DNA of 52,004 nt from Vitrella brassicaformis CCMP3155 (Eukaryota; Protista; Chromerida): the NCBI GenBank assembly GCA_001179505.1, contig CDMY01000556.1, positions 1 to 52,004 on the forward strand, written 5' to 3'. A model generated the notes under the pieces. The model saw only the letters and a program-made list of their open reading frames with translations, had not been told where the DNA came from and did not search any database. Shown here piece after piece: positions 8,799 to 39,076 of this stretch; within the stretch, counting starts at the first letter, position 1; each line of letters begins with the position of its first letter. Both the position numbers and the translations under genes were made by a program.

Positions 8799-11238
8799 TC
8801 ACGCCATCCCCAGCCGTCTAAATGTCTCCCTGCCATCCCGCCCCTTCTCGACCCACCCCACCGCCCCCCACACCACCGCAGCCACATCCTTGCTGAAGCC
8901 GTTGTCGATCTCTCCCTCCAGCCCCCACTTGTTCGCCTCGTCCAGGATGGCCCGCTGGACCACCTCGCGCAACTCCACCTTGCGGCCACCCACACCCCCC
9001 AGCACAAAGCACTGCAGCTGCGGGCACCTCACCAACTGTCCCTCGCTGTCCCTCTTCCTGCCCCCACGGCCCACCACCTCCCCATTGCCCACCACCCGCA
9101 GTGACGCGGCGGCCTCCACGAATCGCGCCATGGCGGTGTTGATGCGGCGGCCGACCTTAGTCGCGTTCTGCACGGGCCGGGGGCTCTCGTCGAGCACCGA
9201 TGGCTTGACAAAGAATGACGCCACGCGCCACGCCACAGCCGACATGTCCAGGTTGGCCAGGGGAGTCTCGTCGTCCTGCCAGGGGGCCACCGGGGTGACG
9301 TGTGGGGGCAGGGAGGGAAGGAGTGGGTCTAATGAGGGGAAGGCGGCCTTGAGCTGCTGGGCAGTGCCGCTATGGAATGCCTTGGTCAGCGCGTCAGCCA
9401 TCTCGCGCTGAGGTCGCAGTGCGGCATTGACGGCCGCCATCACAGCAGTTGGCAGCTCGTTCAGCACCGTGGCATAGTCGATCAGCACCAGCTGGCGGCC
9501 ACGGCGGTCTCTCTCTGTGGCCGTGGGGATGCTGTTGATGTCGGCCCCCGCCCGCAGCACGGTGCGGATGGTCAGCTTGTAGTTGGGAATCTTGGCGCGA
9601 TACTCCTCCTTGTCGGCCTCGGGCGTGTCCGGGTCCTGAAGCCGTTGGGTGTACCGATCGAGCTCATAGGCAGCGAGGGCGAGGGGGCTGTCGCCGAAGA
9701 CTCTCCGTCTGTTGATCTGGTCAGCGAACAGCTTGTGGCAGAGGTAGTCGGCCACGTAGGGAGAGCCACACAGTGCCGCCCAGTGCAATGGCGTCCGTCC
9801 ACCGCCGTCGTCTGCCGTCATGTCAGCCCCGTTCGCCGTAATGAGGTCGAGGTAGCTGTCGATGAACGACTGGGGATAGTGCCCCATTGCCTTGAGGGCT
9901 GCCCGGTGCACCAGGTTTTTGCCGAGTCTTCGTTGGGTGGCGAGGGTGGGGTCTCCTTCGATGAGTTGCCGAAACATCGACATGAGCAGCTGCTGATACT
10001 CGGGAGGGAGGCGGACGACGCGGCTTGGGCAGCTCCATCATCATGTATCCGTCTGGTGGGCAGCTCCCACTCGCGCGGAGGTGGATGTCTTGACGCGCCA
10101 TCAGGAGGTCAAAGGCCGTCTGATTGCCGGATGCGATCGCCAAACGGATGGGCGCCAAACGGTAGGCTGTCTCATTGGGGTCGGCGCCTCCGTCGAGCAG
10201 TGCGGTCAGGATTGCCGCCTGCAGCTCGTCAGACGACCACTGCGGCAGGGCGACGGGGCGGTCATCATCATCGCCTTCCGCTAGAATGGTCTCGACCGTG
10301 TAGCCGGACTTGTTGTCAATGGCGAGACACAGGAGTGGGTAGCCGTAGACAGCACCACTGTCCCTGCCCTCCAGCCCAGTGATGACATCCGGGTCGGCGC
10401 CCTGCTGCCGGATGAGGTGGGTCACTTCTCGCCCATTGGTGAAGCGGCGGCCGATGATGCGCCGTGACAGCTGCTTGGAGGCGTCGCTGGTGCCCTTGAG
10501 GAATCGACCCACTAGACGATCGAGTCCGATGTGGCCCTCAGGTACAGGAAAAGCTGGATCCGCCAGGCCACTGAGAGGATAACCTGCCACACACACAGCC
10601 ACCATACATACAACGGACAGTGATTGTGCGCGTGGGATCTTCTCTCGCGTCTGCCTGGCCTGACGTACCTTCCACCTCATATTGATTGTAGTCGTCGTCG
10701 GAGTATCCGTCATCGATATAGGCATCTTGGTCATCATCGCCATTCTCCTCCTGCATGCCACCCTGACACACAACAAAGAGGCAGGCAGGGGGCGGAAAAT
10801 AACTCAAGGGCCTCCATCGCATGGACCAGTGTTGGTGCTGATGAGTGAGTGCCTCACCGATTCGTCTCCATCTGCTGCCTGCGGACCATCATCACCGTCG
10901 GCCATCTCATCGGCCACCGCGCTCTCCTGCTGCTGCTGGCCGCCTGGACGTCAACACACACACCCTCACGGACCCGGCCTGAGTGTGCTGCTGATGTGTG
11001 TGCGTCGAATGGTCCGTGTGGCAGGCCTGATCACTCACCGCTGTCTGCGCCATTGTTGTCTTGCCCGTCTGGCTGCCCGCCGCCATTGTTATCCTCCTCA
11101 GCCACATCGTCTGCACACACCATCGAAGGCACACACACACGTGTGGCGCTGATGCTGTGTGTTTGATGTGTCACATTCATCTGTGTGTGGCGTACCCGCA
11201 TCGCCACCGTCACCGTCCGCCATGGCAGCGGAGGCCAT
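8799..11238 (-). pseudogene. Ankyrin-repeat protein of a lineage-expanded family with acidic N-terminal micro-exons; apparent frameshift at ~10002
   Basis: Ankyrin motifs YPLLCLAID, LLDGGADPN, NGADMTADDGGGRTPLHWAA, GDSPLALAA, LRAGADIN. Short acidic exons lie between 11238 and 10667, then a large exon 10584-8799. The frame changes from MELPKPRRPPPS to EYQQLLMSMFRQLI without an intron. Confidence 0.7.
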
Positions 11239-11615: not shown

Positions 11616-11915
11616 NNNNNNNNNNNNNNNNNNNNNNNNNNNNNNNNNNNNNNNNNNNNNNNNNNNNNNNNNNNNNNNNNNNNNNNNNNNNNNNNNNNNN
11701 NNNNNNNNNNNNNNNNNNNNNNNNNNNNNNNNNNNNNNNNNNNNNNNNNNNNNNNNNNNNNNNNNNNNNNNNNNNNNNNNNNNNNNNNNNNNNNNNNNNN
11801 NNNNNNNNNNNNNNNNNNNNNNNNNNNNNNNNNNNNNNNNNNNNNNNNNNNNNNNNNNNNNNNNNNNNNNNNNNNNNNNNNNNNNNNNNNNNNNNNNNNN
11901 NNNNNNNNNNNNNNN
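11616..11915. other. Assembly gap (300 N) flanked by C-runs
   Basis: Run of N with 8 C immediately before and 7 C immediately after. Confidence 1.
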
Positions 11916-12098
11916 CCCCCCCTTGCAAAGGAAGAGATCTGCACGTCGTCGAGATCTGAGCTGAACGTCCAGAGTCTGAAGTAGCGGTGCCAGTTTGAAG
12001 CTGATCTTCCATGCGAATGTGATCTTCAACTGCCAAGGCCGCTGCCGCTGATCCGCTGGAGTGAGTGAGCTGGGCAGCCGAATCACGACGGACGGCAA

Positions 12099-15000
12099 AT
12101 GAAGATCTGGCCACTGCTGAGTGGTTTCGTGTACATAAGCGGGTCTTTCGTCTTGGCTCAGCGTACCAACTACGAGGAGGGCATCCAGGCGTCCCCTGAA
12201 GATGACAATGGTGGATGGGATTACTATCGCCCTGACGGCCTCGGCAACAGCAGGGACAGCGGTGCCGCCAGACGGCCTTATCGAAGGCACGGCAACTCGC
12301 ACTCGTATGATGATCTGCCAGGCCAAGTGCAGCCCGACCTGCCATCCGCCGCTGAAGTATCACGCCGGGTGAGTACGGCATAGCACCGCCGTCACTCGTT
12401 GATCCCGTCTGTGGATGCTGTGTGTTGGTGTGTGTGTGCGTCAGATCTTTGCGTTCTCGCCGCACCACCCGCACCCGTCAGTGTCGGTGCTTTACACGGG
12501 GTGGGGACAGATGATCATGCACGACATCGTGGCCACACAGGAGGGCACCGAGCCAATGCCCATCCCCCTGCCCACTCAGTGGCAATGCAACGTCCCGCCC
12601 TTGCCTATCGTCGCTGGGACCTTCTCATGCCCATCGCCAGAGGCCGAGACCCCCGAGTCCATCCCATTCAACCGCAGCCACTACGAGGTCGGCGACGACA
12701 ATGTGCGTGTCCCCGTGAACACACGGACGGCGTGGCTCGATGGGTCGTCCCTGTACGGCGTGGAGAGGGAGGCAGTTATGGCGCTGCGAGAGGGAAGGGG
12801 AGGCCGGCTCAAGATGGACGACGAGGGCTTCCCACCAAGAGTGCCGGGAGGGGACAAAGGCTGCGAATTGTTCGCCTTTGCGCAAGGGGCCGTCAACCTG
12901 CACCCTGTTCTCACTTCTATCGGCATAGGTGAGAGGGGGAAGACGCTCGATGAACGCGGTGAACGAGACTCATTGAGTATATGCACATGTGTGTTTTTCT
13001 GTCGTCAGTGATGGTGCGGGAGCACAACAGATATGCCAAACTGCTCGAGAGTCGCCACCCCGACTGGGACGACGAGGCGATCTTCCGCGAGGCCAAGGCG
13101 TGGGTCGTTGCCCTCATCCAAAAGATCACCTTCTACTGGGTCAGCCAGCAAGGCCAGCGCGCCCACCGATGTTGGAAGGAATCGATGTCCATGTGTGTTG
13201 GTCCCTGCCTGCCTGTACGCAGTACCTGCCGATCCTGCTGGGGTCACCGCTGCCCTCCTGGCAGGCGCACAACGCCACCATTGACCCGCAGGTTGACGTC
13301 TTCAACGCGGCAACGGCCTTCAGATACGGCCACTTCGCCATCTCTGACACGGTCTTCCTTCTCTCTGCCCACTTCACCACCCACCCACTCGGCCACCAGC
13401 CCCTCCTTGCGACAATCAGACGGCCGTGCGCCATCAGGGAGGCCGGCGTGGAGCCGGTTCTGCGTGGCGCAATGGTTCAGCCGGAGGAGAAAATGGAGGC
13501 TGTCATGGGCCAGTCTGTCCGTCTGGCCTCACCGGCTGATCTGCCCGCTCTCAACATACAAAGAAACCGCGACTGGGGAGGTATGCAAGCCGAGGGACAG
13601 TCGACGGGTGACGCTATTTGACTGACATATTGCCGGTTTCTGTGTCTTTCCTCTGCCCACGAACCAACCAGTCGCGCTTTACAATGACATGCGTGAGGCG
13701 TACGGGCTGCATCGCGTGAGCAGCTTGGAGGAGCTGGTGGGCAGAGACAGGAGTGACCTGCTGGAAGCCTTGGAGGACATGTACGACGGCATTGATGCCG
13801 TGGAGGCGTATGTGGGGGCCATGCTGGGTAGGTTCCACATGCACCAACACATTCACTGCGACGTAGTTCCTTTCTAGATCTCTTTGTCTTCTGCCGCCTG
13901 TGGGTCACTCCCCTTCAGAGCCTCTCGAGCTGGCCAAGTCGTCAGGCTATGACGCCACCACGCCTGTCGTGCCGCCCCTCATCGCCGTGTCCATCCGTGA
14001 CGCCTTCACACGCCTCCGCTCATCGGACCGATTCTGGCATGAGCAGTACCTCCCCTACCTTCGAGACAGCATCCCCTATGAGACTGCCAAGAAGGAGCTG
14101 CCCTGGTTCCCCTTCAGAGATGTCGAGCTCGCCCGCGACCTGGCCACCTACGGGCTCACGGAGCTGCTGCTCAACAACACTCGGCTGTGCTGGGCCCCGC
14201 CGAATCCCTTCCGCATCGAGAGCTTCGCCAACGCCCGGGAGGGTCTGCAGAAGACCATGAAGATGGACACCACGCTTCCCAAGTGGACGCAGTGTGACGA
14301 GGGCGCGATGCCCGAGCCGTTCACGTCGACCAGGCGGCAGTCGCTGACATTCCTGTCGGGACAGTACCAGCTCGAGTGGGAGGTGAGGCCACCCAACATG
14401 GGCGATGGCAGCGCGCCAAATAGGATGGACATCACCATCAGTGGCCGGACCAGCGGCTGGGTTGGCTTGGGCGTCTCGCCCGACGGCCGGATGATCGGCG
14501 CCGACCTGCTCATCGGGTGGATCGATGCCGACACGGCCGCACCCGTCCTCCATCGCTACACAGGCGGTCCCGATCGCTACCCTGTGGCCGTACGAGAGGA
14601 GATGGACATCGACACCCAGACAGTCAGCGGGAGGGAGATGGTGGTGAACGGCGAGAGCTGGACGACACTCTCCTTCAGCCGCCCGCTCCGCTGGCCGTCG
14701 GGCGATGGCAAGGCCATCAAACTGGGCGAGACTACGACGATCCTCGTCGCTTTTGGGCCCGAGGGCGCGAAAGAACTGAGGGTAAGCGCAGTTTGTTACA
14801 CTCACACGCATCCGCGTGTGCATCCTTCATGTGTGGGTGTGTGTGAGCAGTTCCACGGTTCTCGACGGCAGGTGGCCATGGTTGACTTCGCCAGCGGCCG
14901 CAGCACCGTCATGGAGTCGAGCAAATCGGTAAGTGGATGGGCGAGTGGGAAGCCGCGGCGACCATTCCCCCTTCCCCCACGCCCCTCTGTCTGTCTGTGT

Positions 15001-18000
15001 CTGCACGCGTGTGCAGGTGCTCTACGTGCATGGGTTGATTATGTGGTTCCTGGCGAGTATCCTCATTCCCGGCTCCTTCTGCTCGGTCCGCTACTTCAAG
15101 CACCGAGAGGGGTGGCTCAATATGCACGAACGGCTGGCGCTGATGTCCATGTCCAATATGATCGGCATGGCGTTCTCAGCGCTGGGTACGCAGCACAGTA
15201 GCTAATCCCACAGACAGACACACAGACATCCTCCATGTACCTCACGTGTGCACCGCGCCCTTCACGCAGCGTCGACCAACGCCATTCTCGCGACGCCGCA
15301 TTCCATCCTCGGGCTGCTGCTCGTCGGCTGCATCGCGCTGCAAACCATCCTCGGTAAGTCAGCTAAGAGAGACGCCCATATGGGATTCAGAGCGTTTTGA
15401 CTGTGCCTTCCCCTTGGTTGCCTACAGGCATAAGCAACAAATACTGGCACTACAGCGCGTCGAAGCGCATTCTGCCGAGGCATGCCCGAGTGGTGCTGCG
15501 GTTCCTTCATGCCCTGTTGGGCACGACCATCCTGCTGGCATCGCTGGCCAACTCGGTCTTCGGCGCCAAAGCTCTGTTTCCCAACCACCCGGTAAGCCTG
15601 TCACCGTAAGTAAGAAGCAACAGGCAAGAAGCAACAGGCAGCTCACGTGGTCACTGCTGGTGTCTTCTTCTTTCAGATCTGGGTCGTTCAGCTGCTGATT
15701 GTTCTGGCCATCACGTGCATGATCGGTCTGCTCGAGTTCCGACGGAGACTCCCGACGCACTTCTTTGCCTTCGTTGACAGTCTGCCCCCCTACCTCCGCG
15801 TCGGTGTCCTCTCCCCCGTCGAAGCACAGCCACTCGTCCAGCAGCCCACAAAGCAGCCCAAGTGGCATCCACTTCGGATTCTGCAGCGGCTCGGCGGAGG
15901 GGGGCTGAACGTGATAGGGTCAGGGGAGCAGAGCTTCACGCCCGACTGCGTCTGCGAGGCAGTCGAGAACGGCTCCCAGTGGGTAGTCGTGCTGGACGGC
16001 GTTTACGACATCCGCAATTTCGTTGGCAGCCATCCTGGGGGAACGGCACTACTGGAGCGTCACGTGGGTTGCGACATCACTGCCCTCTTCCTGGGTCTAG
16101 TAGTGCCGGGCAGCGCCACCAGTGATCTCCGGAGCACTCCCCGCGCCTCCCCCATCACTATGCCAAGACGACCCAGGTTCGCCACCATCGGCGTCACGGT
16201 CCAGGCTGCCACCTCAGCAGAGAATGCACCGGTCGCCTCGCCGAGCGCACCGCCACATGACAATGGGACGGCCAACACTGGTGGTAGTGGTTGTGCTGCT
16301 GGTGGTGGGCAGCAGGTGGCGCCTTGTGCCATGGCGTCCATCATGGAGATTGGTCGGCGCTTCAGCAACAGCGGCCGCGTGATAAGGCTGGGAAGCCCCA
16401 CGAGGGCGGAGTCGTTCGAGCCAACGGTGGTGGGTCGGCCACACTCCGTCTTCGCCGCCTGTACACTTAGGAAATACCGGTCGGTACCGACGGTCGGCGC
16501 ACACAGCACGGCACAGCAAGGCATCTCACCTGACAAACACACCAAGAGATACATAAAAGTGTGTGTGTGTGTGTGTCTTTTGTTCTCAGGGTGGGCACTC
16601 TCTCTCTACAGGACGGCCGCGGCGAAAGAGAAGGCTCCTTCAACCCCCCTCCCTCCTACTTCCCTCAGAAGGTCATGGGCCCCAACAACGCCCAGCCCGC
16701 CCTCATGGCTTTGCTCAAGCCCCTCCTGCAGGCCTCGCCCACACCAGAGGCCATCCGCGGCCGCACCTCTACCCGAAGCGACATGCGCCAGAGGTAAGTA
16801 ATCGCCACAATTTTCTGTTGTATGATTATTTACTCCTCACCCGGTACCTACCGCTATTTCTCCTGCCAGGACGCTGCTGATGTATGGGATGCTGTTCAAG
16901 CACGTCAGCAACACGCCAGTAGCAAAGGCGGTGGGTGGAGCTGGGTCAGGCTCCTCTATCACCCACTCGTCACTGGTGTCGGTGCCGAGTGAGAAGAGCA
17001 GTAGGGAGGCCACCCCGGGCAAGGGCGGCAATGTGGCGGCGGGGCTCTATCAGCCCTTTATCGTGGTCGAGAACACTCAGCTCAACGCAAGGCGCCCAGG
17101 CGAGAGGCAGCTTGCCATCCACAGGATCACACTGGAGAGTGCCACCACCCTCTCCATCGAACACTACAGGCCAGGTATACCCTACCCGGACATGCACCCA
17201 TCGTGGTCTCCCTATCTTGTCTGTCTGTATGTCTGTCTATGTGTGTTGTGCGCATCTGTACATCTGTCAGGCCTGCACGTGTGCATCCTCGAGGACATCG
17301 CTGGGAGGCGTTTCAAGCGCAGCTACTCAGTCGCGGCTACACCGTCCTCCCATCTGCTGACGTTCCTCGTTAAGTCGTATCCCTCCAACGGGAGGGGCAT
17401 GGCCGAATTCCTGTCGTCGCGAAGACAGGGCGACACTCTGCGGCTCAGGGGCTTCCAAGGCACGAACCTGCTCCACGACGCACCCTCTGTGCCGGGCATG
17501 AGCACGGACACAGAGGAGGATACCGACGACGATGCCATTCTGGCGTTCTCTCCCGCGCGAGACCCCCACTTCGGTGTCTACTGGCCCTTCTGTGCGGTGA
17601 TCTCGGCAGGGACCGGCATGACACCCTTCCTCAACCTCATCCGACACCAGGGGCAGGTTATGGGGCGGCTGGCCAGAGACCCCACCACACGCCAAGCGGC
17701 CCTCTTATCGCAGCTGTCCGTCTTGCACGTCTCCCGGCACAGAGACGAGGCCCTTGCGCTGGGCTGGGACGAGATCCGCTCGATCAAGGCCACAGTGAAC
17801 GGGGCCCTTGCTGACGCGCCGGCGCCGCGTGTGACGGCCAATGTGGTTATCTCGGGAGAGTCGCGGGGACAGAGCGCCATCGAGGCTATATTTAAGCACG
17901 CCGCCAGGCCGGGCAGGGCAGCGCAGCTGCATCGGGGTGGTCTGGACGGTGATAATGACGTGCACGAGACAGCGACGGTCGATCGGCAGCTACTGGAGGC

Positions 18001-18541
18001 TTGCGTGCCGTGGCTGGGGCGGCTGTCCTCACGGCCGAGCACGCCCCACACACCGCCGCTGCAGGAGCTGCCGGAAGAGAGCGTGTTGGTTGCGCAGGAG
18101 GAGAGTCCGAGGGATCCCCCGGCCATGCAGACGCGGCAGTCGCCAAAACACGACAAGTGGCTGCAGAGCACACCCGTGACCGTACTCAAGTCGCTGGTGC
18201 ATCGGGCCAAGGGCGGCGCCTCCCCCACACAACCCACACAAACGGTGAGTCGGGGAGAGAGGGGGCAGTGCCAAGATGGCGATGCATGTAGGCCATCCTG
18301 TCTGTCTGTCTGTCTCTCTGTGCAGGTCAACGGTACTCCAGAGCAAAGCGCCTTCCTGTCAGCCTGGAGCATGGCGGCACCGGCACAACAGGAGCCCTCC
18401 CTCTCAGCCATTCTGGCTCGCGGCCCCTCCCCATCCACCGCCCGCATATTTATATGCGGTCCAGCCTCGTGGGTGCATTCGATGCGGCGGGTGCTCGAGA
18501 GTGAGATGCGGGTGCCGAGGGAATATGTCAAAACCCTCTGA
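12099..18541 (+). CDS. Multidomain oxidoreductase: signal peptide - heme peroxidase (peroxidase-cyclooxygenase fold) - DOMON - cytochrome b561 (+1 TM) - cytochrome b5 - FAD/NAD(P)H-binding reductase
   Basis: 15 exons: 12099-12368, 12445-12928, 13009-13139, 13223-13580, 13672-13827, 13919-14781, 14851-14928, 15017-15185, 15270-15353, 15428-15591, 15677-16479, 16590-16793, 16870-17174, 17271-18244, 18326-18541. All introns are GT-AG and the phases match. Total 5259 nt = 1752 aa + stop. Motifs: WGQMIMHD, TAWLDGSSLYG, REHNR, AFRYGH, DLPALNIQRNRDWG, DRFWHE; GVSPDGRMIGAD/FHG; four b561 His; HPGG...HS; RSYS, AGTGMTP, CGP. Confidence 0.92.
12220..14230 (+). other. Animal-type heme peroxidase-like domain (within 12099-18541 gene)
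   Basis: YRPDGLGNS, WGQMIMHD (12502-12525), Ca-site-like RTAWLDGSSLYG, PVLTSIGIVMVREHNR, WDDEAIFREAK, YLPILLG, FRYGH (His codon 13331), LNIQRNRDWG, RLRSSDRFWHE. Confidence 0.9.
14335..14900 (+). other. DOMON domain with Met/His heme ligands
   Basis: YQLEWEV...GWVGLGVSPDGRMIGADLLIGW (Met codon 14491) ...TTLSFSRPL...ILVAFG...LRFHG (His codon 14854). Confidence 0.88.
15017..15740 (+). other. Cytochrome b561-type transmembrane domain plus a fifth helix
   Basis: VHGLIMW (His 15029), GWLNMHERL (15125), PHSILG (15299), FLHALLG (15508), then a hydrophobic helix IWVVQLLIVLAITCMIGLL. Confidence 0.85.
15940..16600 (+). other. Cytochrome b5-like heme domain with long internal insertion
   Basis: WVVVLDGVYDIRNFVGSHPGG (His 16031)...GCDITALFLG, then a ~115-aa insert, then PHSVFAACTLRKYRVGTL (His 16442). 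Confidence 0.8.
17050..18541 (+). other. FNR/cytochrome-b5-reductase-type FAD- and NAD(P)H-binding domains
   Basis: YRPGLHV, KRSYS (17315-17329), LVKSYP..GRGMAEFL, LRGFQG, ISAGTGMTPFL, IFICGPASW. Confidence 0.87.
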
Positions 18542-19175
18542 GATGGTGGGTGGGTGAGTGGGGGAGTGTGCGTGAGTGAATGAGACCGACGTCATTCACC
18601 CCTTCATGTCGTGTCACTGTGTAGTCAGCGCTTCATTTAGCTAATATGATAGGCCATGCCAGTACGTTATGGCGGCTTGATGGTGTGTATCAGTGGTTTT
18701 TTAGTCTGCTTGTGCAGGCAGTGAAGTTTGTAGAGAGTAGAGGGAAGAGGGATAGAGAGAGAGGCGTCCAGCGTCACGCTTCTGTGCATTCATGTGGCTG
18801 TCTGTCGGTCTGTCTGTCTGTCTGTCTGTCTGGTGTGGCTCGCCAAGAGGGATCGCGTTGCGGTGCGGATGGCTGGCTGTCTGGTGCTGCATGCTTCAGA
18901 CCACTACTCATGCAATCAAGGTCAACACCGTTAGTGCACAGAAACGACCCCCAGAACTGATCGAGGCAAAACCTGCATGCCCTAGCAAGCAAAAGTCCCA
19001 CACTCCCTGACACACAGCAAACCACGTCCTAGGACAAGCCCCATCCTGTCTCCCAGACACACAGTACCCCAACGCAACAGAGCACACAACGCACTCGGAC
19101 ACCAAAAGCCACGCCAAGGTAGCCACAGCGAGAAGAGCAGCAGAGACACTACTTTTTTTAATACATGGACAGCAT

Positions 19176-37400: not shown

Positions 37401-38137
37401 CACCGACCTCAAGACCAGGATAGAGAAGGGGCGGGTGCGCAGAGCTATGGAGGCGGCTGAGACACAAAGCTGCTCAGCGGCTTTGGAGGAGCCCACTGCC
37501 GGTCGGCCAGCCAGCCATCTGTACATATAGATGCGCGCAGGACTGTGTGTGTGTGTGGATCCTTTGCTAGATGCCGAGGAGGAGGCATTGCTGACCGAGA
37601 TGGAGCAGCACAAGACCACCTACAAAGACTGCACCGCACAGCTCAGAGAAGTCAAAGGCGAGACAGACACCGACCGACCGACCGACCAGCCCTCACCCCT
37701 CCTACACACACACACATCCATCCCCTGTCTCCCTATCTCTTATCTCTCTCACTCAGGTCACATAGAGCGCATTCAGCAGCTGATGGTGCAGAACAAGGCC
37801 AGGCTCCAGCGCGACTTTGAGAGATGGCTGGAGACATGCAGACGAAAGGGGCCGCCAGCAGCAGCTGCGGCGGCAGCACCCCCCGCCCCACCCCCACCAT
37901 TGCACAGCTCTGGGAGCGATCTGCCGTCCCCCAGTGAGTGCCACCCCAATGGGGTGCCCAAATACACGGGCCACCAGGACACTGATATGGTGAGTAGAGA
38001 GAGCTACTGGGGTGGGTGGGTGCGGTGCACCGTCAGGGAGGGAGGGAGGGATGCATGTGTGTGTTCTGTTGGTTGGTTGGTTGCAGGACATAGCCAAGTT
38101 CTATCAGGCCAGGCTGGCCAAGAGACAAGGGCCGTGA
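34457..38137 (+). CDS. KIF6: Kinesin-9 family motor, KIF6-like
   Basis: Micro-exon ATG GCT T (34457-34463) followed by gtaagt and spliced to [11 protein letters not shown]-loop [10 protein letters not shown] (~35031-35060); switch [13 protein letters not shown]; switch [11 protein letters not shown]; [15 protein letters not shown]; [23 protein letters not shown]; C-terminal DIAKFYQAR; stop at 38135-38137. Confidence 0.88.
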
Positions 38138-39076
38138 GAGAGATGTGTGTGTGTGTGTATGCGTGTGTGTGTGAGGTGTGCGTGTTGATGCGACCTTGCC
38201 ATTGCCCTTGCAATTGTCACTGTCAATTTCGCGCATTTATTGATCGCCATAGAGGCAGGCAGGCAGGCAGGCACACACATCATCGCGCAGCAGGGTGTGG
38301 TGTGTTGTGTCTGTCAATCGGCAAGACTACCACACACACGAAGACACTCATCAGACAGACAACGTAGGCAGGAATTAAACCGTCACCCAAACCAATGCGC
38401 TCATGGCTAAGGAGGGAGGGAGAGAGGGAGGCCAGGGGGGGAAAAAGCCATCCCTTCCTCCACACACACAAATATAGAGCGGGCCCATCAACCAAGCCAT
38501 CACGCCCAAGTGAGATGTCTGTCTGTCGCCCTCCTGTCCGGTCGGCAAGCAACCGGTTGGAGAACTCCCTCATGTCCATCATCGAGGCCACACTGGTCTT
38601 CCGTCTGTTGCTGACGGAAGGCCGCAGTCACCCAGACGACGGCCATGTGTGAGCACTCACAACAGAGCTGCCGGCCCATGTTAATCAGGACTCGAGGCGA
38701 GAGGAGAGACACGAGGAAGACAGAGAGAGAAAGAAAAAGACCGACAGACAGACGGACAGACACAAATACGGAGGGGTGGTAGGTGAGCTTACGCAATTCA
38801 CCATCATAGCCAGAAGAGGGCGGGAAGGGAAAGCCATTAGGTCGGTGCTCTTCCCCCCACCTCGCCTCGCCTCCCCCCCCACCAACAACTCCATCAACTC
38901 CGCCAGACAAACAAAAAAACATAAGAGGGAGAAGAAAGCTGACGGTAACTGACGGAGCCCCCCCCCTCCCCCCGCCGGCCGCCGACCTGTCCGCAAAGCT
39001 AGCGAATTGAGCCGCACAGCCCCTTCCTGCCCCCCTCCTACCCTATCAGTCAGTCATGCCACGTCATGTCGTCTGA

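Follow-up and report, generated by a model that had tools for sequence, protein, structure and literature searches.

A 15-exon gene of Vitrella brassicaformis encodes a peroxidase-DOMON-b561-b5-reductase protein, a putative trans-membrane electron wire

Introduction

Can a single polypeptide bring electrons from cytosolic NAD(P)H across a membrane to a peroxidase-fold haem on the other side? To our knowledge, only a few routes of trans-membrane electron export are known: NOX/DUOX/FRE, the ascorbate-fed b561 and CYBDOM proteins, and bacterial multihaem conduits. The question is raised by a locus of Vitrella brassicaformis CCMP3155 on contig CDMY01000556.1 (assembly GCA_001179505.1). The window, which is the whole stretch of DNA analysed here, is 52,004 nucleotides long. 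A preliminary description made from its sequence had read the locus as one protein composed of a peroxidase, a DOMON, a cytochrome b561, a cytochrome b5 and an NAD(P)H reductase, and had considered it an analogue of DUOX. Our analysis indicates that the protein is probably a conduit through which cytosolic NAD(P)H supplies electrons to a far-side haem enzyme.

Gene Structure and Transcription

Two spliced RNA contigs, one of 5716 nt from run X5 (2013) and the other of 5722 nt from run X6 (2015), both map to 11921..18791 on the forward strand. The two runs are separate samples from separate studies. Fourteen GT..AG introns are removed in both contigs, and pieces from run X1 have two junctions in common with them. 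The contigs from X7 and X3 are unspliced and are therefore considered to be DNA. The spliced sequence contains a single ORF of 1752 aa in 15 exons, from the ATG at 12099 to the stop ending at 18541, and there is an in-frame stop upstream of the ATG at 12066-12068. The intact 15-exon frame described earlier matches the X5 and X6 contigs exactly, and the single ORF in two independent runs bears out the claim of one transcript and one polypeptide. The features are listed below. Pfam scores on the window protein were obtained from exon or ORF pieces.

11921..18791, + strand: transcript, one spliced RNA contig with 5' UTR, 15 exons and 3' UTR
12099..12368, + strand: exon 1 CDS, aa 1-90, signal peptide and acidic low-complexity N-terminal stretch
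12445..12928, + strand: exon 2, aa 91-251, peroxidase distal side (Pfam An_peroxidase, 67.9 bits)
13009..13139, + strand: exon 3, aa 252-295, peroxidase, REHNR motif
13223..13580, + strand: exon 4, aa 296-414, peroxidase proximal side (Pfam An_peroxidase, 50.9 bits)
13672..13827, + strand: exon 5, aa 415-466, peroxidase (Pfam An_peroxidase, 29.7 bits, ORF piece)
13919..14781, + strand: exon 6, aa 467-754, peroxidase end, linker and DOMON with M658 (Pfam DOMON, 45.5 bits)
14851..14928, + strand: exon 7, aa 755-780, DOMON end with H756
15017..15185, + strand: exon 8, aa 781-836, b561 TM1 (H785) and TM2 (H817)
15270..15353, + strand: exon 9, aa 837-864, b561 TM3 (H847)
15428..15591, + strand: exon 10, aa 865-919, basic cytosolic loop and b561 TM4 (H892)
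15677..16479, + strand: exon 11, aa 920-1186, TM5, linker and cytochrome b5 (Pfam Cyt-b5, 40.7 bits)
16590..16793, + strand: exon 12, aa 1187-1254, b5 end (VGTL) and low-complexity linker (family profile)
16870..17174, + strand: exon 13, aa 1255-1356, linker and start of the FAD-binding barrel (family profile)
17271..18244, + strand: exon 14, aa 1357-1681, FNR-type reductase with inserts (family profile)
18326..18541, + strand: exon 15, aa 1682-1752 and stop, C-terminal reductase strand with C1725-G-P

The 5' end of the transcript adjoins an assembly gap of 300 Ns at 11616-11915.

The RNA contigs are assemblies, and a contig that spans two genes is on its own no proof of a single transcript. 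Adjacent genes fused by read-through or by the assembler, with no single protein behind them, could give such a picture. The ORF is uninterrupted over all 14 splice junctions in two independent runs, and the collinear order recurs in more than 25 proteins whose source genomes and transcriptomes are unrelated. Against these observations, an artefact is hardly credible. The locus is one transcribed 15-exon gene, which encodes one membrane protein of 1752 residues.

Domains Preceding the Membrane Segment

Three exon pieces match An_peroxidase of Pfam at 67.9, 50.9 and 29.7 bits (cut-off 25). Based on the alignment with relatives, the haem residues are distal H116 and proximal H332. The motif WGQMIMHD contains Q112, H116 and D117; FRYGH contains R329 and H332, and ALNIQR contains N406. 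The proximal pocket and the Ca site are fully kept in the alignment (R329, H332, N406, D117 and T-x-W-x-D-x-S). From the profile and these haem and Ca residues, the domain is assigned to the peroxidase-cyclooxygenase superfamily. By sequence it falls in the peroxidase branch, and COX matches the peroxidase domain of the family only at E 1e-15.

The distal side differs from that of classical (chordata-type, MPO/LPO) peroxidases in having neither the distal Arg nor the Asp/Glu haem ester links. The position of the distal Arg, which speeds Compound I formation in classical peroxidases, is occupied by A239, and the alignments place Met at the Asp column and Leu (L242) at the Glu column. Most members of the fused family keep the distal Arg, yet they are also without the two ester residues. 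In the alignment, a whole chytrid sub-clade has lost the distal Arg. With Gln and His only, the distal side of the window protein is similar to that of prostaglandin H synthase, whose peroxidase site acts on organic hydroperoxides.

Among solved structures, short haem peroxidases of bacteria and protists (8S6C; Dictyostelium peroxinectin A, 6ERC) are the nearest to the domain. The match of exon 2 to 8S6C has E 4e-5, and for the chytrid relative P0183 the matches to these short peroxidases have E 8e-88 and 2e-71. These enzymes and the window domain have both haem His, distal and proximal, and the Ca site in common, whereas Ala at the distal Arg position and the loss of the ester residues (Asp to Met, Glu to Leu) set the latter apart. 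In the family tree, the terminal branch of the window protein is 1.93 against a median of 0.56. Because this branch is very long, its peroxidase domain may be relaxed or re-purposed.

The DOMON follows in exon 6, where the exon piece scores 45.5 bits in Pfam (cut-off 32.7). The Met and His ligands described earlier are M658 (codon 14491-14493) and H756 (codon 14854-14856), both in conserved columns: all 25 of the 25 sequences have the Met, and 23 of them have the His. These residues indicate a DOMON of the haem-binding type with a Met/His pair.

Membrane Core and Cytosolic Domains

Five hydrophobic helices are present at aa 783-941. Four consecutive TM helices contain H785, H817, H847 and H892, all in columns that are invariant among the relatives, as expected from the earlier claim of a b561 with all four His. 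The b561 domain of the window protein is split over exons 8-11, and the Pfam evidence comes via aligned relatives: Cytochrom_B561 scores 30.4 bits in P0145, about 47 (47.1) in P0050 and 25.4 in P0011 (cut-off 23). The four His columns of the family profile align weakly (E 0.38) with four His of Arabidopsis b561 4O6Y, which we take to be haem ligands. The membrane module is accordingly classified here, from its residues and helices, as a five-helix CYBDOM-type b561 with two predicted haem sites. The fifth TM helix of the preliminary description is present, but it is not an extra helix; it belongs to the normal five-helix core of CYBDOM-type b561 (PMC10784544). The cytosolic loops of the b561 region contain basic residues.

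A signal peptide is found at aa 1-20, as had been proposed, with cleavage after VLA. Lys and Arg together number about 12 on the cytosolic loops versus 3 on the outer loops. The signal peptide, the five TM helices and the positive-inside rule support a topology in which the peroxidase and the DOMON are outside and b5 and the reductase in the cytosol, in agreement with the arrangement suggested previously.

The exon piece containing cytochrome b5 scores 40.7 bits against Cyt-b5 of Pfam (cut-off 23.7). The first haem His is H1038 within HPGG. Val occupies the canonical position of the second His, and H1048 is not conserved among the relatives. The second His is H1175 in the motif PHS, behind a low-complexity insert of 104 aa within b5 (aa 1063-1166, window 16106-16417). 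Three independent alignments agree that H1175 fits the family pattern H-S-x-x-A-x-x-x-L-x-x-x-x-V-G-x-L, and from its sequence context this residue is assigned as the second axial ligand. Both His of b5 are thus present as claimed earlier, the second one being displaced behind the insert. In the AF2 model of this region, pLDDT is 79-90 in the core, below 50 in the insert and 72-81 in the helix after it. Foldseek matches this model to cytochrome b5 structures with a probability of 1.00, and the match stops short of the far side of the insert.

The reductase contains the FNR motifs in order: R1373-S-Y-S for FAD, GTGMTP from G1470 for NAD(P)H, and C1725-G-P, which align with those of benzoate dioxygenase reductase 1KRH, a weak match to the domain. 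A profile built from the relatives, with the window protein left out, covers the whole of aa 1003-1751 with a score of 104.5 bits. These results are in line with the FNR-type reductase of the preliminary description. FAD_binding_6 reaches 17.6-19.2 bits in the window pieces (Pfam cut-off 21.1), and NAD_binding_1 is not detected in them by Pfam; the relatives carry both. The reductase has three large inserts, Ala in the G-x-x-S/T motif where FNRs have Ser/Thr, and Phe in the RGP motif where the relatives have Pro. Taken over the whole protein, the domain order is as first described, and all haem and flavin ligands are there.

Distribution of Related Proteins

Collinear relatives with 24-30% identity are present in Cafeteria, Platysulcus, Cyanophora and at least 10 chytrid genera. 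The relatives have the same six Pfam domains in collinear order, for example P0184 (Obelidium), P0183, P0151 and P0064. At each ligand column, 23-25 of the 25 sequences compared agree, and proteins with the fusion occur in several eukaryotic supergroups. In the AF2 model of P0064, the peroxidase domain is helical, and a beta-sandwich, five long helices, b5 and a two-lobed reductase can be recognised. The architecture is not unique to Vitrella; it represents an unstudied family in protists and chytrid fungi, and the earlier guess that similar fusions sit in protist or fungal genomes proved right for both groups. A literature search found neither a characterised member nor a paper on the fusion.

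Shorter natural forms also exist: peroxidase-DOMON-b561 in Diphylleia and Goniomonas, peroxidase-DOMON in one heterolobosean, and DOMON-b561-b5-reductase in P0072/P0291. These forms indicate that the modules are combined as units.

Electron Path and Alternative Functions

The following path can be proposed. After cleavage of the signal peptide, the peroxidase-fold haem domain and the haem-b DOMON would be outside the cell or in a lumen, the five helices would hold the two b561 haems, and b5 and the FNR-type FAD/NAD(P)H domain would be cytosolic. Electrons would pass from NAD(P)H to FAD and the b5 haem (H1038/H1175), then to the inner b561 haem (H817/H892), the outer b561 haem (H785/H847) and the DOMON haem (M658/H756), and finally to the peroxidase haem (proximal H332, distal H116) or to a substrate bound there. 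In the end reaction that we prefer, Compound I and II, the oxidised states of the peroxidase, would be reduced. The net result would be a self-sufficient trans-membrane NAD(P)H:peroxide reductase, removing H2O2 or organic hydroperoxides at the outer face, like a cytochrome c peroxidase with a built-in electron supply.

We infer that electrons flow from the inside to the outside because the only low-potential donor module is cytosolic. Each inter-domain transfer would be analogous to those in b5-reductase-b5 fusions and in the CYBDOM protein HYP1, and cofactor occupancy is predicted from the ligands. A CYBDOM protein conducts electrons across the membrane, with a proposed path via three b haems (PMC10784544), and the spacing of the b561 His pairs and the Met/His DOMON site here are like those of that protein. 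The electron wire itself is well supported. For the preferred reading as a whole, a type-I-like polytopic membrane flavo-haemoprotein whose reductase-b5-b561-DOMON-peroxidase wire ends in peroxide reduction, the odds appear about even (roughly 0.5). Counted against it are the change of the distal Arg to Ala, the long branch, the Pfam scores of the reductase below the cut-off with its motif changes, and the AF2 pTM of 0.42 for a relative, which bears on the geometry between domains and on the distances from haem to haem.

The potential of cytochrome b5 is near 0 mV, and NOX haem potentials are much lower than those of b5 and b561. In one b561 member, potentials of +144 and -19 mV are reported (PMC10005133). 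With such values, a high-potential terminus (Compound I/II, Fe(III) or Cu(II)) is sensible, and peroxide or metal reduction would be favoured over DUOX-like reduction of O2. The protein might nevertheless be a DUOX-like generator of oxidants, reducing O2 to superoxide or H2O2 at the DOMON or peroxidase haem for subsequent cross-linking (dityrosine, wall or cyst) or halogenation. The plan is alike: An_peroxidase is on the outer side, the membrane module has two haems, and the FAD/NAD(P)H domain is cytosolic. The solved relatives of the family's peroxidase domain include DUOX1 (E 1e-48), and many organisms with the family, such as chytrids, make walls or cysts. The b5 and b561 potentials are far above what the O2/superoxide couple requires, which makes an H2O2-generating role thermodynamically unlikely. 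In addition, this copy has neither the distal Arg nor the residues for covalent links that halogenating or cross-linking peroxidases typically have, and Pfam finds no EF-hand or other obvious switch. We consider oxidant generation unlikely; of the DUOX analogy drawn earlier, the likeness of architecture stands and the chemistry is not supported.

The same potentials suit Fe(III) and Cu(II) as acceptors, and the protein might be an NAD(P)H-driven CYBDOM metal reductase, in which electrons leave at an exposed DOMON haem, where chelated Fe(III) or Cu(II) would be reduced and then taken up. The role of the peroxidase domain would be accessory, clearing H2O2 near fresh Fe(II) or binding a substrate. 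HYP1 and CRR are ferric/cupric reductases (PMC10784544, PMC10784552), and the peroxidase-less P0072/P0291 show that the wire can work without that domain. On the other hand, the peroxidase haem ligands, Ca site and proximal pocket are kept family-wide and the fusion is kept across supergroups; from this conservation, the haem domain is considered a working part of the chain. Metal reduction as the main function seems rather doubtful. In the window copy, the domain might alternatively be degenerate, serving as a structural, adhesive or sensing ectodomain (compare peroxinectin-like and mammalian DUOX-like domains) on a generic trans-membrane reductase. The Ala at the distal Arg position, the loss of both ester-link residues and the very long terminal branch are consistent with degeneration. 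The domain still has Gln and His on the distal side, the triad of His, Arg and Asn on the proximal side, and the Ca ligands, however, and the Arg-less pocket is common to the whole chytrid clade with the rest kept, which suggests a changed rather than lost activity. Degeneration is quite improbable in our view.

In the most far-reaching reading, these proteins would form an unrecognised and widely scattered eukaryotic enzyme class: self-sufficient single chains, each with five haems and FAD, that pass electrons of cytosolic NAD(P)H to a peroxidase-fold haem outside the membrane. This proposal falls just short of an even chance. If true, it would be a third export route for reducing power, independent of NOX/DUOX/FRE and of ascorbate-fed b561, and its chemistry, either the reduction of peroxide or a reductive activation on the peroxidase-fold haem, would be undescribed for any known enzyme. 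With six redox cofactors built into a single chain, the family would lend itself to studies of long-range electron transfer. Free-living protists and the chytrid fungi, some of which are pathogens, could have in it a new way of handling extracellular peroxide or metals. One expression study could define the function of the whole family, for which the Arg-containing and Arg-less sub-clades are natural variants for comparison.

Comparison with Known Systems

DUOX1/2 are similar to the window protein in being single polypeptides with an N-terminal extracytosolic An_peroxidase fold and a membrane module in which each of two b haems has a pair of His ligands. In both, a FAD/NAD(P)H domain from the FNR superfamily forms the C-terminal part on the cytosolic side. 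The peroxidase-homology domain of DUOX1 matches that of the family at E 1e-48 to 1e-41. DUOX differs in having a six-helix ferric-reductase domain in place of the five-helix b561, and a NOX-type reductase in place of the FAD_binding_6/NAD_binding_1 type. In comparison with DUOX, the window protein has DOMON and b5 inserted, has neither EF-hands nor the extra N-terminal TM helix, and would be expected to operate at too high a potential to reduce O2. No Pfam match to the six-helix ferric-reductase domain, NOX-type FAD/NADPH domains or EF-hands was found on any window piece, in line with the earlier remark that a NOX core and EF-hands are absent.

Two systems are functional analogies only. In cellobiose dehydrogenase (CDH), a DOMON-like Met/His cytochrome domain is the internal shuttle that hands electrons to an outside acceptor, and in cytochrome c peroxidase Compound I is reduced by a cytochrome. 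Neither crosses a membrane, and homology is confined to the weak similarity between DOMON and the CDH cytochrome (E 0.042 and E 0.5). Fusions of b5 and b5 reductase (NCB5OR/CYB5R4, and the haem-FAD part of assimilatory nitrate reductase) have the same order, b5 followed by an FNR-type domain, and the b5 fold of the window protein matches solved b5 domains including that of Ncb5or. These fusions are soluble or peripheral, whereas the pair here is tethered to a membrane cytochrome and has long low-complexity inserts.

CYBDOMs (Arabidopsis HYP1 and CRR, and animal FRRS1/SDR2) have in common with the window protein the signal peptide, the outward Met/His DOMON, the five-helix b561 and the topology. 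The ligands of HYP1 are H211, H245, H278 and H314, with M90/H174 in the DOMON (PMC10784544), and the spacing of the latter pair is comparable with that of M658/H756. CYBDOMs use cytosolic ascorbate as the donor and end at the DOMON haem, whereas the window protein adds b5 and the reductase inside and the peroxidase outside.

Gene Structure and Transcripts

One gene on the forward strand encodes a protein in which a peroxidase domain, DOMON, cytochrome b561, cytochrome b5, and a reductase are joined. The gene region is GC-rich (~60%), and its reading frame is split into many pieces. Public sequencing runs were aligned to the window as transcript evidence. Two runs, X5 (2013) and X6 (2015), are separate samples from separate studies. 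Each gives a single contig on 11921..18791 of the forward strand (5716 nt for X5 and 5722 nt for X6), which omits 14 stretches. These stretches are 69–110 nt in length, and all are bounded by GT...AG after small shifts permitted by the tool. Pieces from run X1 have two junctions in common with the X5 and X6 contigs. Contigs from runs X7 and X3 continue through the introns, indicating that they are DNA. The joined exons constitute a 5687-nt mRNA with a single long ORF of 1752 codons, from the ATG at 12099 to the stop codon ending at 18541. An in-frame stop codon is located 30 nt 5′ of this ATG. The coordinates, exon count (15), and protein length in the preliminary description, made from the sequence alone, are identical to those of this RNA-based model.

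Coding exons of the fusion gene, from spliced RNA contigs
12099–12368, +, CDS exon 1
12445–12928, +, CDS exon 2
13009–13139, +, CDS exon 3
13223–13580, +, CDS exon 4
13672–13827, +, CDS exon 5
13919–14781, +, CDS exon 6
14851–14928, +, CDS exon 7
15017–15185, +, CDS exon 8
15270–15353, +, CDS exon 9
15428–15591, +, CDS exon 10
15677–16479, +, CDS exon 11
16590–16793, +, CDS exon 12
16870–17174, +, CDS exon 13
17271–18244, +, CDS exon 14
18326–18541, +, CDS exon 15

An assembly gap of 300 N (11616–11915) stops five bases short of the 5′ end of the RNA contigs. The 5′ UTR is thus possibly incomplete, and the coding start is unaffected. At this gap, the assembly lacks the promoter and probably some of the 5′ UTR. 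GTCT/CAGA-type microsatellites are seen in three introns (11, 13, and 14) and the 3′ UTR (16545–16588, 17218–17246, 18290–18326, and 18792–18840). They are flagged as contig-breaking repeats, and 17110–17243 shows a depth spike. At 18841–19100, a separate RNA contig of ~1.1 kb is seen, which begins just past the 3′ UTR repeat and has a depth of 137–151 versus 28–100 for the gene. It is either an adjacent transcript or the same transcript interrupted by the repeat. An upstream ORF (8799–9983, reverse strand) contains ankyrin repeats, and a distant ORF piece (37531–38367, forward strand) matches the KIF9 kinesin-like domain. No functional link of these neighbors to the redox gene is evident.

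Peroxidase Domain

Pfam was run on in-frame exon pieces, and key residues were located by alignment to relatives and then mapped to codons. An_peroxidase is matched with 67.9, 50.9, and 29.7 bits (cut-off 25). The motif WGQMIMHD contains Q112, H116, and D117, and the motif FRYGH contains R329 and H332. Also retained are N406 and the T-x-W-x-D-x-S pattern of the Ca site. The column of the distal Arg is occupied by Ala, and the Asp and Glu columns of the ester haem links are occupied by Met and Leu, respectively.

A cyclooxygenase or dioxygenase identity of this Arg-less domain was considered and rejected: cyclooxygenases are matched with only E 1e-15 versus 1e-88 for peroxidases, and the Tyr-x-x-His spacing is absent. 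A sub-clade of chytrid relatives also has an Arg-less domain. Its closest solved structures are the short peroxidases 8S6C and 6ERC, followed by LPO, DUOX1, and MPO, and the structure matches to cyclooxygenases are far weaker than those to peroxidases. With Gln and His but no Arg, the pocket of the window protein resembles the site at which prostaglandin H synthase reduces hydroperoxides. Based on this resemblance, organic hydroperoxides are as likely a substrate as H2O2.

DOMON, Cytochrome b561, and Membrane Topology

DOMON is matched with 45.5 bits (cut-off 32.7), and its haem ligands are M658 and H756 in the alignment to relatives. The His set of b561 is H785, H817, H847, and H892. Based on the helix order, the outer haem would be bound by H785/H847 and the inner haem by H817/H892. 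The pairing is the same in HYP1, a CYBDOM protein (DOMON and b561) of Arabidopsis, where H211/H278 are apical and H245/H314 are cytoplasmic (PMC10784544). When 24 relatives and the window protein are aligned, each ligand column holds the expected residue in 23–25 sequences.

Hydropathy indicates a signal-like segment at the N-terminus (aa 3–21), with V-L-A preceding the likely cleavage site, and five helices at aa 783–941. The stretch following the signal peptide is acidic, unlike a plastid transit peptide. Given a cleaved signal peptide and five helices, the N-terminal part is predicted to be outside and the C-terminal part inside. Lys and Arg total ~12 in the predicted cytosolic loops with flanks versus 3 in the outer loops. 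The same topology was established by experiment for CYBDOM proteins (PMC10784544).

Cytochrome b5 and Reductase

Cyt-b5 is matched with 40.7 bits (cut-off 23.7), and H1038 is within its HPGG. In the alignment with flavocytochrome b2, the canonical position of the second His is Val. The window protein has an insert of 104 residues rich in Ala, Ser, Gly, and Pro, followed by P-H1175-S-x-x-A-x-x-x-L-x-x-x-x-V-G-x-L. This is the canonical b5 pattern and also that of relatives, and three differently made alignments concur. H1175 is probably the second haem ligand of b5. H1048 was rejected as this ligand since its column is not conserved among relatives. Loss of the second His was also rejected; one alignment put Arg there, and better alignments give H1175. 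In the AF2 model of the b5 piece, the helix after the insert shows pLDDT 72–81, and the insert is below 50. Foldseek matches this model to b5 structures in an alignment that ends before the insert and does not reach the H1175 helix. In the family alignment, the loop between the two His is an insertion hot spot. Its excess over the canonical b5 loop is ~10 residues in all members, 20–40 in chytrids, and 104 in the window protein.

FAD_binding_6 scores below the cut-off (17.6–19.2 versus 21.1 bits). The reductase motifs are R1373-S-Y-S, G1470-T-G-M-T-P, and C1725-G-P, with large low-complexity inserts between them. With a profile of 23 relatives from which the window protein was left out, aa 1003–1751 are aligned as one piece with 104.5 bits. 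The single PDB sequence match of the reductase exon is 1KRH, which is weak (E 0.18). Past the second strand of the NAD(P)H lobe comes the stretch S-R-H-R, which is only a hint that NADPH might be the cosubstrate.

Distribution and Phylogeny of Relatives

An exhaustive search with exon 6 revealed no close orthologue among 1.84 billion representatives; the best matches are multi-DOMON proteins with 42% identity. The window protein itself was not found in two word-indexed searches either, and ESM Atlas returned nothing beyond generic DOMON clusters for exon 6. Collinear relatives emerged when the full model was compared locally with the exon 6 search results, and two more searches widened the set. 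Their Pfam architecture is An_peroxidase + DOMON + (b561) + Cyt-b5 + FAD_binding_6 + NAD_binding_1.

Sources of fusion relatives
Stramenopiles: Platysulcus tardus, Cafeteria roenbergensis
Glaucophyte: Cyanophora paradoxa
Chytrid fungi: Dinochytrium, Phlyctochytrium, Obelidium, Chytriomyces, Synchytrium, Geranomyces, Boothiomyces, Nowakowskiella, Quaeritorhiza, a Chytridiales isolate
Several metagenome and Logan assemblies

All of them are annotated as hypothetical, "heme peroxidase" or the like. They show 24–30% identity to the window protein from the peroxidase domain through b5, and the number of aligned columns varies among them (~720–1050). For the Platysulcus protein P0064, AF2 gives the folds in the order expected, with five long helices among them; the pTM is 0.42, and domain packing is thus not predicted. 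Shorter forms are peroxidase-DOMON-b561 in Diphylleia and Goniomonas and peroxidase-DOMON in a heterolobosean. A peroxidase-free form, DOMON-b561-b5(-reductase), is represented by P0072/P0291.

In the peroxidase-domain tree, 24 of the 25 b5-containing proteins and Goniomonas are on one side, and all bacterial and animal peroxidases are on the other (SH-aLRT 87). The exception is the b5-containing Nowakowskiella protein P0188, which groups with the latter. The window protein groups with the chytrid sub-clade in which the distal Arg is likewise lost (SH-aLRT 93), a placement that is unsure because its branch is very long (1.93).

Proposed Electron Path and Comparison with Known Systems

The C-terminal reductase would be the sole module able to accept electrons from a soluble cytosolic donor, and DOMON and the peroxidase domain would be the sole modules on the outer side. 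Outward flow from NAD(P)H would thus be the natural direction. Electrons would pass from FAD to b5, with b5-reductase fusions as a precedent, then from haem to haem through b561 across the membrane, which also has precedent, and then on to the haem of DOMON, a step proposed for HYP1 (PMC10784544). We infer the final hop, from DOMON to the peroxidase haem, and the reaction it would serve.

The potential of b5 is near 0 mV. Those of the b561 haems are near +144 and −19 mV (PMC10005133). Given these potentials, electrons on the b5/b561 haems would easily reduce peroxidase Compound I/II, Fe(III), or Cu(II). In the role ranked first, the protein would contain its own electron supply to reduce peroxide at the outer haem. 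A metal reductase with the peroxidase domain as an accessory is ranked second. A DUOX-like oxidant generator is ranked third: the plan is like that of DUOX, but the carrier potentials do not permit efficient superoxide formation from O2. Of the features that define NOX/DUOX, only the peroxidase-fold ectodomain and membership in the general FNR superfamily are shared. Every other defining feature is missing, and no Pfam match to ferric-reductase, NOX-type, or EF-hand domains is seen on the exon pieces.

The window protein can best be seen as a CYBDOM core lengthened at both ends. The outer extension is a short-type haem peroxidase, and the inner one is an NCB5OR-like b5-reductase pair. The parts are all known, and the combination can already be seen in public protein sets. 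The full-text literature searched, within the limits of that collection, yielded neither a paper on the fusion nor a characterized member. Judged from its sequence, the protein would belong to trans-membrane electron-exporting oxidoreductases and could be of high interest for redox enzymology.

Other Module Combinations

Two ENA metagenome proteins of ~1400 aa, P0215 and P0242, contain the family-C GPCR seven-helix domain (PF00003) besides An_peroxidase and DOMON in precomputed Pfam. Apparently, the peroxidase-DOMON ectodomain pair is joined here to a receptor in place of b561. In P0050 (906 aa), two DOMONs and b561 precede the two lobes of a copper type II ascorbate-dependent monooxygenase; this is another case of a CYBDOM core with a catalytic domain attached. 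P0238 of the diatom Seminavis robusta (1610 aa) is named "Dual oxidase 1". Pfam finds An_peroxidase and Cyt-b5 in it, and the usual distal His motif is absent in the alignment. It may be a misnamed member of the fusion family or a misnamed cousin. P0197 of Quaeritorhiza haematococci (1828 aa) contains SH3-like and CDH-type cytochrome domains besides peroxidase, DOMON, and b5.
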